A DNA stretch of 64,000 nucleotides from Selaginella moellendorffii. Its lineage: Eukaryota > Plantae > Lycopodiophyta. The DNA lies in the NCBI RefSeq assembly GCF_000143415.4, contig NW_003314266.1, forward strand, positions 1,572,463-1,636,462, in the 5' to 3' direction. Within the stretch, counting starts at the first letter, position 1. The number at the start of each line of letters is the position of its first letter. A program made the position numbers and the translations under genes. The notes under the pieces are model-generated. The model was not told the DNA's origin. It ran no database searches and was given only the letters and a program-made list of their open reading frames with translations. Below, one piece after another: positions 16,561 through 52,819 of this stretch.

Positions 16561-16772
16561 CTCCCATCTAGTTCGTGAGCTAGCACTTTGCATGCATGTC
16601 CTGGTACTCGCTGGAGAGGAAGTCCTGGAGGAGGGACAACACTTACAAGCTTGCCGAGTCCTTTTCTGTTGCAGGAATACTTTTGACAGCTCCTGGTTTC
16701 AACAAACCGTTGTCTTTTTGTTTTCTTTCTATACAAGCCGAGTTGAAGTGACCAAAAAAGTACCGAGAGCCT

Positions 16773-16872
16773 NNNNNNNNNNNNNNNNNNNNNNNNNNNN
16801 NNNNNNNNNNNNNNNNNNNNNNNNNNNNNNNNNNNNNNNNNNNNNNNNNNNNNNNNNNNNNNNNNNNNNNNN
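16773..16872. other. Assembly gap (100 N)
   Basis: Run of N. Confidence 1.
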
Positions 16873-18628: not shown

Positions 18629-19321
18629 TCAAACGTATTCGTGGCCGGGCTCTGCGAGTGGCGAGTTCTCGGCCTGCATGCCCGTCTCGTTCCAGTAATC
18701 CACGAGAATGAAATCCTCCACGAACGGCCCCTCCTTGAGCTTCGCCAGCACCACTTCCGGGCTGTTGTCAATCAGCTCCACCTCGTCGATCCAGCGGAAG
18801 AAGGCCAGGTAGCCGAAATCAAACCCCCTCGCTCGAACCGGCGAGAAATTGGGGCCGCCACCATCGAAGCTCGACGTCCTGCTCGCCTCGGCGATCTCCG
18901 AGACGAGCTGCTCCCTGCCATCGCCGCACACCCCGTCCTTGAGCCGGCACAGCACGATCCTCTTTGCCTCGAAGAACTGGTCGACGTGCTTCTCGACGCT
19001 CGACTCCCAGTCCAGCGCCAAGGCGGACTCGCAGATGGGATTCACGAACTTGTCCATGCAGTAAATCTGCGCTGGGTGGAGCGAAAACGCGGCCAGCGCC
19101 GCCTTGTTCTGGTGCCGCGAGTGGAGGACGTGCGTGTAGCCACCGCTGAGAATTTCGTGCGCCGGCCATATAGACAGCACCGGTCCGGCCTTGAGGTGGA
19201 GGACGCCGTTGATGGCCCGCAGCTTGTTAAGTTGTTTCACCATCTCGGCTCGCTTCTCGGCCGAAGCCCAGTGCCGGACCTTGAAAAGAAGGACGTGCTC
19301 CACCAGGTGAACGATCGGCAT
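18629..19321 (-). CDS. Stress-responsive A/B barrel (Dabb) two-domain protein
   Basis: VEHVLLFKV..GVLHLKAGPV..GYTHVLHSRH..HPAQ; second domain with GPNFSPVRARGFDFG. A short upstream exon (~19400) is possible. Confidence 0.88.
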   Translation of the reverse strand: MPIVHLVEHVLLFKVRHWASAEKRAEMVKQLNKLRAINGVLHLKAGPVLSIWPAHEILSGGYTHVLHSRHQNKAALAAFSLHPAQIYCMDKFVNPICESALALDWESSVEKHVDQFFEAKRIVLCRLKDGVCGDGREQLVSEIAEASRTSSFDGGGPNFSPVRARGFDFGYLAFFRWIDEVELIDNSPEVVLAKLKEGPFVEDFILVDYWNETGMQAENSPLAEPGHEYV

Positions 19322-19514
19322 CCTGGAGCTTCACTGGAAATCTCTGGAAGAAAACCAAGAGCACAAGCGTGAGAATCGTTGTCGCGCTGTTGCTTGGCCA
19401 TCTTGATCACAGCGCTACTTTCACTGAAGGGAGATTTGCTTTTCTCACTCACTTATCGAAACGACAGCATACCTCTTCGTAAACGTCTCCAGAAACTAAA
19501 AGATAAGTTTAGAA

Positions 19515-19588
19515 TGCCGGAGAGTGGGATTGAACCACCGACCTTGTGATTTTCAGTCACACGCTCTGACCAAATGAGCTACTCCGGC
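19515..19588 (-). tRNA. trnF-GAA: tRNA-Phe (GAA), non-canonical body
   Basis: GCCGGAG-TA-GCTC-ATTTGGTCA-GAGC-G-TGTGA-CTGAAAA-TCACA-AGGTC-GGTGG-TTCAATC-CCACT-CTCCGGC-A forms a full 74-nt cloverleaf; TTTT lies ~14 nt downstream. Confidence 0.93.
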
Positions 19589-19932
19589 ATCGTGCTGCCC
19601 TCATGAAGATATTCACAAGCCTGAGCATGCTTTATGCATTGCTAAAATTAATGAAAAACAGCAAAAAGGTAATAAAATGGTCGGGAAACTCTAAAAAAAA
19701 CGTTTTTTGTTTCACTTCCAGACGTCCTTATGGTCGAATTTATATCCGGGTCATGATTGGCGGGGCAACAACAATATAATGTAGCAAAAAACTTCCAAGC
19801 GCATGATCCTTCCAAGATCAACCTAGGTCTGTTTCTTCTTGAAAAAATCTAGACTAGAGCTTGCAGCAAGAATACAATGCAACATTATGCCAAAAACAAA
19901 ACCATAGACTAGATGACTACCATACAGCTTTA

Positions 19933-20006
19933 TGCCAGAGAGTGGGATTGAACCACCGACCTTGTGATTTTCAGTCACACGCTCTAACCAAATGAGCTAC
20001 TCTGGC
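19933..20006 (-). tRNA. trnF-GAA: tRNA-Phe (GAA), second tandem copy
   Basis: Same cloverleaf with acceptor stem GCCAGAG/CTCTGGC and D-loop ATTTGGTTA; upstream CAA motif; T-runs ~30 nt downstream. Confidence 0.93.
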
Positions 20007-20262
20007 ACCTTGTTGCCCTACCAATGAACTTCGCGAGCCTGAGCAAACTTTGTACACCTGCATTGTGAAGTAAAATCAGACAAACCAAAACTAAAACCAA
20101 GAGCTCCTGTATAAAGTGTTCGATCATAAGCACCGGATGAATAGTAAAGAAGCACTTACTCTGTTAGCAGAGGGATAAACGCTGAGCACAATCCACGATC
20201 AGTAACAACATGATAGACTAATTTCGCAGCGAGGAAATCATCCAATCTTAAAACGAAAGGAT

Positions 20263-20704
20263 TCACAGTCCTCCCTGCTTGGCTCTTGCGTCGGTCCACG
20301 CCTGAGCAATCGTTTTCTTCATGTTATCGTCGCCCTCGTCGTACATATTCTGCAACAACAAGGTCGCGATCGATCCAAAACCATGCAGCCATGGAAGTTA
20401 CCTTCATCAGGTCCATGATGCCAGCCATCGGATTCTTCCCTTCGTCCGGCTTAAACTGTGCATCCACAATCGATCGTCTCAGACAAGAGAGAAAAGCTTC
20501 AAACGAGATCTTCAAACGAGAAGAAAGCAAGTGAGTCGCTAAGCGAGATCGAGAGCTCACCTGCGAGGAGAGGGAGGATTCGTCGCCGGCGAGGCCGATG
20601 CTTGCGATCTCGGTGGAGAGCAACGATTTCACTCGCGGCCACTTAGCTTGATCCAGCAGCGCCTTGAGCTCCTGGAGATCATCCATGACGTCTGGCGCCA
20701 TCAA
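20263..20704 (-). pseudogene. CacyBP duplicate lacking the CS-domain exons
   Basis: Inverted match to 10905-11000 and 11520-11752, with the middle deleted. Confidence 0.88.
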
Positions 20705-48981: not shown

Positions 48982-49987
48982 ATGGAGGGGGCGAGGACCG
49001 ATATTCTCCCGCCGATCCATCCAGCGCTGGCGCCGCTGGGTTTTCTACTGGGATCTTGGCGGGGAGCTGGAGAGGGCGGCTTTCCCACCATCAAATCGTT
49101 CGGCTATGGCGAGGAAATTCGCCTCTGGCACACTGGAAAGGTACTTTGGGGATTTTTCCTTGGAATGGCTTGCTTCTAGAGGAGAAAGCTTCTCTTTTGC
49201 TCGATCAATTCCTTTCGCTGCGTAGAAAGTGTCCAAACTTGCGATTCCTTCTCGTTCGTTCTTTGCAAACTTTGACATTGCTTGAGTTTTCTTCTCGTTA
49301 GTTCCTTGCAAACTTTGACATTGCTTGAGTTTTCTTTTCGTTAGTTCCTTGCAAACTTTGACATTTCTCGAGTTTTCTTCTCGTTAGTTCTTTGCAAACC
49401 TTGAGTCAGTGCTTGCGTTTTCTTCTTGTTTGTTCTTTGCATTTTTTTAATTTTTTTTGCCATGATTTGTTTGCTCATCCGGTACTACGATGGACTTGTT
49501 TTCCAGCCAGTGATGGCCTACACGCAAAAGACATGGAAGGCATCGTCCGGGGAGCCTATGCACGCCGAGAGTGGCTACTGGAGGCCCAGGCCCGATGGCT
49601 CGCTCGAGGTTGTCATCGCACAAAGCACCGGTCTTGCGGAAGTCCAGGTACTGTACAGAGCGAATTTCTCGTTTTCAAGTCTCCGGACGTTCGTGCTAAT
49701 GAAGCAAAACCATTTCTCCTGAACAGATAGGTACGTACGATACCGAGAACAAGACCGTGACGCTTCACTCCTCGCTAGTGGGAAACGCCAGCAAGGTTCT
49801 CACTCTTCAAGTTAGCAATCGTGTTTTTCCTTTCTCACGCTGTGCTTGGTTTCAGGTCACAGCGATTTCGAGGCGCTTCCAAGTCACTGGAGACGATGAG
49901 CTCAGCTACACGGTAGAGATGGCCACCTCGGGTACTAATCAACAGCTTATGCCTCATCTTCGAGCGGTCCTGAAGAAAGTAAGCTGA
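48982..49987 (+). CDS. Nitrobindin (THAP4-like heme-binding beta-barrel), 4 exons
   Basis: IHPALAPLGFLLGSWRGAGEGGFPTI, PMHAESGYWR, AQSTGLAEVQ, PHLRAVLKK (heme-ligand His). Confidence 0.93.
49249..49441 (+). repeat. 43-bp minisatellite (~4.5 copies) in nitrobindin intron 1
   Basis: Unit ttctcgttagttccttgcaaactttgacattgcttgagttttc. Confidence 0.9.
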
Positions 49988-50825: not shown

Positions 50826-51706
50826 TGAATTAAGTGCTGGAGCTGCGAGAGATGAGGAAGGATGATTGCAAGTCGAGTTTTAAGTTGAGCTTGCTTGGAG
50901 CACAAGGTACGTGACTTTGTCAACACGAAAGTGCACGATTTTCATTATAAATTAAATCTCTGAACAATAGTAATATGAGTTGGTTGATGGACGTGAGACG
51001 GAGCTTGTACGACCCTGTGAATATGGTGGATGGGGGATAAAATTTGTGGTCTTATACCTATAGAATGGAGAACCAATCCATTTTGGTTCTGTCCATAGCA
51101 GTATTCCAGGATATCTGGAGCTACGACTGGCAGTTCCTTTGAGAAGCAGTTTCAAACAAAGTTTCCATACCAGTGCGTATGAATCATAATTGAAATTAAA
51201 ACATCTTCTAATGGTGTAATAGGCTGGATGAAGCCAAATTTAATTTTGTCACGAGTGTATGTTGCAAACAGGTCCTGATTTTGTGGCAACTCTTTGTACA
51301 ACAACATGACAAAAGATGGATGATCTTCAGACCTCAACCGTCACAGAATCAGGGTTATCCAGGTTATCCTTAAGTACATGGCCAACATTTACGTCAACTG
51401 GATCTCCTATATGGATCTTGCACCGAGCTCTTGACAAGATGATGGTTGGTCTTAGCAGGTCGATAGTTGTTCTCCCCGGTACCAAAGCTCTTATAAAAAT
51501 CCATATTGGCTCTGTCCATACTAGTATTCCACTACATCTGGAGCTACATCCTTTGCTTGATTCATAATAAGCAGAGAGAGAAAAACAAATCACTCCGATC
51601 TGTTCAGAAGCAAAGTTTGCATAAGCTAATTAACTTGGAGCTTCCTTGTGGAGAATGTGGTGCTTATCAAGGTGTAATCTTGACTTAAGACAAAGTTTCT
51701 GTTAAT

Positions 51707-51780
51707 GGTTTCATGGTGTAGTTGGTCATCACGTCAGTCTAACACACTGAAGGTCTCCAGTTCAAACCTGGATGAAGCCA
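51707..51780 (+). tRNA. trnV-AAC: tRNA-Val (AAC)
   Basis: GGTTTCA..TCAGT-CTAACAC-ACTGA..TCCAG-TTCAAAC-CTGGA-TGAAGCC-A; downstream TTTTT. Confidence 0.93.
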
Positions 51781-52194
51781 AATATATTTTTGTCACAAGT
51801 AACCTTTAGTCAAGTCTTGATATTCTTCATAATTAAATGGACAGGTAACAAAAGATAAAGATAATTCCAGCTAAACGAAAGACCATATGGATGTTAAGAC
51901 GATGGTTGTTCTTTGCAGTTGATAGTTGTTCTTCCTGGGGCAACAAGCACATCTTGAAACCAAAGCTCTAATAGAATGGAGAACCTGGTTCTGTCCATAC
52001 CAGTATTCCAGGACATCTGGAGCTCGATCCATGATAAGCAAGGAGAATAAAACAAATCACTCCGCTCTGTTCAAAAGAAAAGTTTGCATACCTTGATAAG
52101 CACCAACATTCTCCATGAGAAGCCTCCAGTGCTTGGATAACTTATTTATCGAAGAATATATTGTGGTCCTGGCTTAAGATGAAGTTTTGTTAAT

Positions 52195-52268
52195 GGTTTC
52201 ATGGTGTAGTTGGTCATCACGTCAGTCTAACATACTGAAGGTCTCCAGTTCAAACCTGGATGAAGCCA
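52195..52268 (+). tRNA. trnV-AAC: tRNA-Val (AAC), C38>T variant
   Basis: Identical except anticodon loop CTAACAT; no immediate T-run. Confidence 0.85.
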
Positions 52269-52745
52269 AATATATAGCTAATGGATCTCTCTCTCTCTCA
52301 TTAAATCTAAGAACTCCATAGCAGCATGTCACCTATCAGTAACTTATTTTGCCTCCTTGGCTAAATCCTGAGAAACCGGTTTGCCTTGTCAAATATCAGC
52401 GTTGCCCTGGCCTTTCTATCCACAGGTTTCTTATCGTCTAGGGCTTTGACGCCAGAGCCCATTTACATTTCGCTACATACATTGAAAAAGATGACAAACG
52501 ATTTTACCCCTGAAGTGAGAAAATTGATCCATGTGCACAGCAGAAATCGTTAACGGCATTATAATGCGAATATGGTTCGATCAGGTCCTCATGAGCAGCA
52601 GGGAAAGAAAAACCAGTCACTCCCTCAGTCGATCCATTAAAAAATAAAGTTTGCATACCTTGACGAGCACTGCGTTCTCCATGACAAGCTTTGATATTTA
52701 GGGAAGAATTTGCTCATTCTTCTATTAGACAGGCTTTTTGTTAAT

Positions 52746-52819
52746 GGTTTCATGGTGTAGTTGGTCATCACGTCAGTCTAACACACTGAAGGTCTCCAGT
52801 TCAAACCTGGATGAAGCCA
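52746..52819 (+). tRNA. trnV-AAC: tRNA-Val (AAC)
   Basis: Identical to 51707-51780. Confidence 0.9.

Follow-up and report, generated by a model that had tools for sequence, protein, structure and literature searches.

A nuclear tRNA-Phe(GAA) gene pair of Selaginella moellendorffii with an Asn-like central part: an unusual isodecoder, likely anticodon-shifted

Canonical eukaryotic tRNA-Phe carries G20, a PheRS determinant, and G37, the site of wybutosine or m1G. Two neighbouring tRNA-Phe genes in the nuclear genome of Selaginella moellendorffii have the GAA anticodon and A73 of the canonical molecule, but both G20 and G37 are absent and U20 and A37 are found instead. The locus thus raises the question of where such genes came from and whether their product is a special tRNA for the organelles, as the first-pass annotation had proposed. 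The answer reached here is that the locus encodes an unusual isodecoder, likely anticodon-shifted, and that it is not a demonstrated import system. Specifically, the comparison of sequences favours, at a probability that we put at roughly 0.5, nuclear tRNA-Phe(GAA) isodecoders that would have arisen by an alloacceptor shift from an Asn type to Phe, followed by tandem duplication and retention through selection or gene conversion.

The gene pair and its two haplotypes

The window, by which we mean the whole stretch of 64,000 nucleotides analysed, was scanned with ARAGORN, which called minus-strand tRNA-Phe(GAA) genes at 19514-19589 and 19932-20007. Rfam RF00005 matched both over their full length of 74 nt with all stem pairs standard, at 71.8 bits (E 1e-13) for copy 1 and 71.3 bits for copy 2 where the gathering score is 29, so that the two programs agree on a pair of intact cloverleaves with a start-to-start spacing of 418 bp.

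19515..19588, minus strand: tRNA-Phe(GAA) copy 1, with G4-C69, C20a, U15, U20, A37 and A73 (ARAGORN, Rfam RF00005)
19933..20006, minus strand: tRNA-Phe(GAA) copy 2, with A4-U69 and U20a, the rest as in copy 1 (ARAGORN, Rfam)

The copies are identical at 71 of 74 positions and differ at positions 4 and 69 and at D-loop position 20a, which is C in copy 1 and U in copy 2. The 4:69 pair is G-C in one copy and A-U in the other, and comparison of the two sequences bears out the claim that this acceptor-stem change is compensatory. Both genes have the class I arrangement of 7-, 4-, 5- and 5-bp stems with 7-nt anticodon and T loops, and the centroid fold of copy 2 is a cloverleaf. They have in common U8, A14, U15, G18 G19, U20, G26, the pair A31-U39, C32 U33, GAA, A37 A38 and A73, together with the variable loop AGGUC, the T loop UUCAAUC and the arm sequence GUGUGACUGAAAAUCACA; U20 and A37, as originally noted, can be read directly in both. 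The conserved residues U8, A14, G18 G19, U33, G53 U54 U55 C56 and A58 are all present, and the tertiary set is standard except at 15:48, where the purine 15 - pyrimidine 48 Levitt pair is absent and U15 stands with C48 in both copies and both haplotypes, just as the annotation had flagged. Phage tRNA-Phe genes with U15 have A48 (variable loop AGGCA) and so form a Levitt pair of another kind; with C48, the U15 of the Selaginella genes is left uncompensated.

The Pol III signals that had been proposed are also in place. The A-box and B-box regions of both copies, read from the sequence, are near consensus, and a run of T residues follows each gene on its 3' side.

19498..19501, minus strand: TTTT run, Pol III terminator-like, 14-17 nt 3' of copy 1 (read from the sequence)
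19892..19901, minus strand: TTTTGTTTTT, Pol III terminator-like, 32-41 nt 3' of copy 2 (read from the sequence)

The locus lies on scaffold GL377570.1 of assembly GCA_000143415.2 among intron-containing plant genes, and the two tRNA-Phe genes that it carries are nuclear and well formed but not of the canonical eukaryotic G20/G37 type. The adjoining intronless gene at 18629-19321 (minus strand) encodes a Dabb-domain protein, for which the protein collection gave no relative at E <= 1e-10 outside a three-member S. moellendorffii cluster. Both tRNA genes are present on the second haplotype (GL377566.1) with the same 4:69 states, and the tRNA bodies differ between haplotypes only at 20a. Here the states are swapped, haplotype A having C in copy 1 and U in copy 2 and haplotype B the reverse, which suggests either gene conversion or recurrent change at 20a.

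Outside the tRNA bodies, the spacer differs between the haplotypes by a 64-bp duplication and a 67-bp indel, and the 5' flanks of the two copies can be aligned over 45 nt.

19589..19633, minus strand: 45-nt 5' flank of copy 1, with the block AAAGCATGCTCAGGCT..GAA (ungapped alignment with the copy 2 flank)
20007..20051, minus strand: 45-nt 5' flank of copy 2, with AAAGTTTGCTCAGGCT..GAA, and with CAA triplets immediately 5' of the gene

The ungapped alignment gives 30/45 identity and retains the common block AAAG..TGCTCAGGCT.G.GAA, in keeping with the upstream motif that had been described for both genes, and the 3' flanks are unrelated. Flanks that have decayed around a tRNA that has stayed unchanged, with its stem change compensated, argue for constraint on the tRNA or for gene conversion limited to it. 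The pattern points to a duplication that would be old enough for the flanks to decay while the tRNA was constrained or converted.

As a separate observation on the spacer, a 40-bp piece at 19714-19753, within the 67-bp stretch missing from the other haplotype, matches at 38 of 40 positions a very abundant sequence from elsewhere that has unlike flanks. The abundant sequence was seen at contig depths of 490-610 in runs X1 and X6 and 7 in run X2, and in about 63 raw RNA reads of run X12; the piece may be a spacer insert of an organellar or other highly expressed sequence fragment.

An Asn-like central part

When the pair is set against canonical eukaryotic tRNA-Phe as represented by yeast (PMC3923128), the GAA anticodon, A73, A31-U39, G26, the AGGUC variable loop and the GCUC/GAGC D stem are alike, whereas U20, an extra 20a, A37 and U15 replace the yeast-type D loop with G20, G37 and G15, and the pairs 28:42 and 29:41 are swapped. 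Eukaryote-type tRNA-Phe copies found through the yeast anticodon-arm string carry G20 and G37, lack 20a and have the stem UCAGA/UCUGA, in agreement with yeast that G20/G37 is the canonical state, as the annotation had stated. The pair A31-U39 is common to yeast tRNA-Phe, E. coli tRNA-Phe and these eukaryote-type copies.

The central part of the molecule was followed with a 28-mer running from the 3' strand of the D stem through the variable loop. Given the Asn states at positions 31, 35, 36 and 39, it had 37 exact matches in IMG/VR, every one of them a tRNA-Asn(GUU) on giant-virus-type contigs. With positions 31, 34-36 and 39 left free there were 58 IMG/VR matches, comprising 44 Asn, 6 Arg(ACG), 4 Lys(UUU) and 4 Thr(UGU) but no Phe, and A31-U39 as in the Selaginella pair occurs in 7 of the 44 Asn matches. 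The Asn matches reduce to 29 unique tRNAs, in all of which G15, U20, A37 and A38, positions outside the search pattern, are invariant, with G73 in 28; G26 and AGGUC were fixed by the pattern for nearly all 29, and their constancy is uninformative. From position 8 to position 48, copy 2 differs from one of the viral Asn tRNAs only by G15U and two anticodon bases.

The Selaginella genes therefore share with eukaryote-type tRNA-Asn(GUU), as sampled in the 44 giant-virus copies, the D stem, U20, G26, the anticodon stem (UGUGR/YCACA), C32 U33, A37 A38 and the AGGUC variable loop, and some of those copies also match the 9-nt D loop and A31-U39. The Asn identity itself is lacking, the pair having GAA, A73 and U15 where the Asn type has GUU, G73 and G15, and the acceptor and T stems differ as well. 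Over 30 stem and loop positions the pair differs from eukaryote-type tRNA-Phe at 5 or more, the D loop differing in addition, and from the Asn type at 0-2, a comparison that rests on pattern-chosen giant-virus tRNAs, one aligned contig and background plant tRNA sequences. Expressed as changes needed for the central part, this amounts to about 4 from the Asn type (two anticodon bases, G73A and G15U) and about 8 from canonical tRNA-Phe. The contig in question, 482 nt long and from run X6, which also has an exact 193-nt match to the locus, matches tRNA positions 1-57 at 51/58. It continues past position 57 to the 3' end ..CCCTCCTTCTAGCG (equivalent to ..CCCTCCUUCUAGCG), which we take to be that of a plant tRNA-Asn.

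The tRNA-Asn-like body of the first-pass annotation accordingly stands for the D arm, the anticodon arm and the variable loop, where 44 of 58 arm matches are Asn and none is Phe; it does not stand for the acceptor and T stems, which are not common to the Asn type and for which no source was identified. Whole-length identity (59-74% to the sampled Asn tRNAs and 77.5% to E. coli tRNA-Phe, the best match in that genome) was rejected as a measure of ancestry, since all sampled class I tRNAs reach 65-77% and only a stem-by-stem comparison is informative. The further claim, that U20 and A37 are an acquired organellar-type Phe identity, fares worse: the two residues are indeed those of bacterial and organellar tRNA-Phe, but they do not discriminate, being present in 29 of 29 sampled Asn tRNAs. 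As the standard states of Asn-type tRNAs, they are most simply regarded as inherited and not adaptive.

The history that we prefer would begin with a duplicated Asn-type gene in which U35 U36 became A35 A36 and G73 became A73, yielding GAA and A73 as the main Phe identity elements. The gene has A31-U39, seen in the sampled Phe tRNAs and some Asn tRNAs, and would have picked up G15U, with U20, A37 and A38 retained from the ancestor. The shifted gene would then have been duplicated in tandem with about 45 nt of its 5' flank, and selection or gene conversion would have maintained both copies. These changes suit a Phe decoder, as GAA and A73 are reportedly the major determinants for PheRS (Sampson et al. 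1989, cited in PMC3923123). AsnRS relies mainly on the anticodon and G73, and with GAA and A73 in the pair, charging with Asn should be rejected. The genes would be transcribed by Pol III from their internal A and B boxes, and the product would be charged by a PheRS and read UUY codons. With A36-A37-A38 in place of G37 no wybutosine is possible, and an i6A-type modification should be present instead. Like other nuclear tRNAs of S. moellendorffii, this one may enter mitochondria.

Among the points that weigh against such a shift, the arm is not exclusive to Asn, as 14 of the 58 arm matches are Arg, Lys or Thr; and U15/C48 breaks a nearly universal tertiary pair while U20 leaves the molecule without the cytosolic PheRS determinant, which makes the efficiency of charging uncertain. 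Alloacceptor shifts of nuclear tRNA genes are documented (Rogers and Griffiths-Jones 2014, PMC3923123), and the Selaginella pair resembles them, as well as mitochondrial tRNA remolding (PMC4783518), in combining the body of another acceptor family with a new anticodon and discriminator by way of duplication. The nuclear cases cited there were found by synteny between close species, whereas the Selaginella pair has no known ortholog with the ancestral anticodon and has two anticodon bases changed. The portions of PMC3923123 and PMC4783518 that describe shifts and remolding make no mention of a change from Asn to Phe. If the genes yield a working tRNA, a land plant decodes some UUY codons by a tRNA-Phe lacking both wybutosine and G20, a natural test of how much the modification and the determinant matter, and a clear two-base alloacceptor shift would be added to the few known nuclear cases.

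Transcripts, organelles and other readings

Assembled transcripts place copy 2 in a messenger RNA. One contig of run X2 spans 19786-20057, after which its next 27 letters correspond exactly to 20160-20186; this contig is spliced across 20058..20159, so run X2 contains RNA. The intron is bounded by GTAAGT..CAG on the minus strand, lies downstream of the stop codon of the upstream gene (20263-20265) and has its acceptor 51 nt 5' of copy 2.

20058..20159, minus strand: intron of 102 nt, GT..AG, in the 3' UTR of the upstream co-oriented gene (run X2 contig joining 20057 to 20160)
19709..20057, minus strand: terminal 3'-UTR exon in its known extent, containing copy 2 (X1 and X2 contigs)

The exon is assembled from two X1 contigs (19709-19859 and 19856-20006) and the spliced X2 contig (19786-20057), the runs concerned being sparse sets, and the X1 contigs extend it to at least 19709, beyond the T run of copy 2. 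Copy 2 is thus also part of a spliced Pol II transcript as the 3' UTR of the upstream gene. Continuous RNA joining a protein gene and a tRNA was found for copy 2 only, no transcript contig covering copy 1. Dicistronic tRNA-mRNA transcripts have been reported for 23 tRNA genes of the species (PMC8166872), and copy 2 resembles them in sharing the strand of the upstream gene, whose spliced transcript covers it; unlike those listed, it lies inside a separate terminal 3'-UTR exon, and the gene-tRNA pair on GL377570 and GL377566 is absent from the list in that paper. As for mature tRNA, no CCA-tailed transcript was seen, and a poly(A)-type run of raw reads gave only partial matches from other loci.

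Two details of single low-depth contigs may be recorded. The X2 contig (depth 7) has T>C at 19948, that is, G at tRNA position A58 where both genomic haplotypes have A, and this could reflect m1A58 at reverse transcription, a plain error or a difference between strains. The 151-nt X1 contig at 19856-20006 ends exactly at position 1 of copy 2; either RNase P cleavage of the read-through transcript or chance could account for this end.

The position of copy 2 within a spliced exon lends something to the view that the pair does not decode at all, being a poorly charged or unprocessed isodecoder kept by gene conversion, or a tRNA-like element of the 3' UTR or source of tRNA fragments. The known dicistronic transcripts of this species (PMC8166872) are in line with it, as are the departures of U15/C48 and U20 from conserved positions and the exchange suggested by the 20a swap between copies and haplotypes. 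Against it, the genes keep four perfect stems, one of them through a compensated change, and tertiary positions that are standard except for 15:48, and copy 1 is equally conserved yet lies outside all transcript contigs. We consider this account unlikely.

Under the proposal of a dedicated organelle tRNA, mitochondria would take up this isodecoder selectively, and the monomeric organellar PheRS, to which U20 and A37 would be matched, would charge it there. The mtDNA of S. moellendorffii has no tRNA genes (PMC5654404), as the annotation had stated, and some nuclear tRNA-Phe must therefore be imported. In plants without a mitochondrial tRNA-Phe, the two-subunit cytosolic PheRS was not found to be re-targeted, which makes organellar PheRS the likely mitochondrial enzyme, and it appears to charge the imported nuclear tRNA-Phe (PMC10375062). 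The same enzyme is argued to accept ordinary cytosolic tRNA-Phe in Arabidopsis and is described as permissive, so a special imported tRNA is not required. In some of the plants that lost their mitochondrial tRNA-Phe, organellar PheRS has been duplicated and has specialised (PMC10375062). U20 and A37 are present as the proposal expects, but they come with the Asn-type body and need no adaptive explanation, and other PheRS determinants of the E. coli type are missing, G26, A44, G45 and C60 of the pair all differing from E. coli tRNA-Phe.

Plastids do not call for an imported tRNA-Phe, since Selaginella plastomes keep trnF (PMC6486807); S. kraussiana expresses its plastid tRNA-Phe, and nuclear tRNA-Phe is excluded from its chloroplasts (PMC11573648). 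Chloroplasts of Selaginella do receive plastid-type or bacterial-type tRNAs encoded in the nucleus, and the tRNA-Pro and tRNA-Arg-UCU described by Berrissou et al. 2024 (PMC11573648) are like the Phe pair in being unusual isodecoders of the same genus with changed anticodons that look selectively kept. However, those tRNAs have prokaryote-type bodies and proven plastid enrichment, whereas the Phe pair has a eukaryote-type body, is known from its genes and coexists with a plastid trnF. On balance it is improbable that the import proposal is right, and we attach an equally low likelihood to its fuller form, in which Selaginella keeps an Asn-derived nuclear tRNA-Phe without G20/G37 that would be preferentially imported into mitochondria and charged by the organellar PheRS. 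Were it true, it would be a tRNA-side solution to the problem of importing a two-subunit PheRS. In Selaginella every mitochondrial tRNA has to come from outside the organelle, and among the synthetases only PheRS is hard to re-target. These circumstances make the locus a specific candidate that could be sought in the tRNA-seq data already available for Selaginella.

The pair might instead be the ordinary or main tRNA-Phe of the Selaginella cytosol, a replacement in this lineage for the canonical G20/G37 type. The genes do have the look of fully functional ones, and both haplotypes conserve them. To our knowledge, though, G37 is universal in eukaryotic cytosolic tRNA-Phe, and two genes per haplotype would be few for a main Phe decoder. 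This genome moreover has at least two or three other tRNA-Phe(GAA) loci, with genes placed on GL377565 and GL377576 in the supplement of PMC8166872 and none of them described as unusual, and that paper gives SELMODRAFT_91152, _229902, _27860 and _17712 as neighbours of other S. moellendorffii tRNA-Phe and tRNA-Asn loci. A literature search for wybutosine-pathway genes, taken as a proxy for a G37-bearing tRNA-Phe, gave none. Replacement of the canonical type is in our judgement doubtful.

The last alternative is transfer to the nucleus of a tRNA-Phe gene from bacteria, mitochondria or plastids. A37, U20 and A73 match bacterial tRNA-Phe, the top match in E. coli is likewise tRNA-Phe, and nuclear tRNAs of organellar or bacterial type do exist in Selaginella (PMC11573648). 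But G26 and AGGUC are common to yeast and not E. coli tRNA-Phe, and the 9-nt D loop with U20 and 20a occurs in neither, while some Asn-type tRNAs have it. No exact match to the 28-mer was found among 185,579 prokaryotic species, each represented by one genome, and the 18-nt anticodon arm has 11 matches in the same genomes, close to the chance expectation, none of them in a tRNA. In JGI metagenomes, 6 of 20 anticodon-arm matches are tRNA-Phe genes in phage-like tRNA arrays with unrelated bodies, and a 25-mer had no match in IMG/VR. Plastid trnF, in which the Taberlet f primer sits, bears little resemblance to the Selaginella pair. Literal sequence searches in the literature returned only unrelated primers and tRNAs. 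The bacterial origin that the annotation had offered as an option thus found no related tRNA body in prokaryotic, metagenome or IMG/VR searches, and a transfer of this kind is very improbable.

An upstream element and other features of the window

The sequence AAAGTTTGC occurs 8 times in the window where 1.09 copies are expected, and 4 of the 8 are found 5' of tRNA genes and share the gene's strand. One precedes tRNA-Phe copy 2 and three precede tandem tRNA-Val genes.

20043-20051: AAAGTTTGC, 37 nt 5' of tRNA-Phe copy 2
51612-51620, 52079-52087 and 52646-52654: AAAGTTTGC, 86-107 nt 5' of the three tRNA-Val genes
51707-51780, 52195-52268 and 52746-52819, plus strand: three tandem tRNA-Val(AAC) genes (59-60 bits, ARAGORN and local Rfam)

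At the place matching that of copy 2, tRNA-Phe copy 1 has AAAGCATGC. We regard AAAGTTTGC as a possible upstream element for tRNA genes in Selaginella. The whole-window Rfam pass, run at the gathering threshold, did not report the three tRNA-Val genes, and a blank from that pass is consequently not evidence of absence. No PPR gene was found in the window. An assembly gap (a run of N) lies at about 16600-16800 and shows as 34 X in the open reading frame translations. Three more copies of AAAGTTTGC lie within a 43-bp tandem repeat (caaagtttgcaaggaactaacga...) at 49265-49359 on the minus strand.
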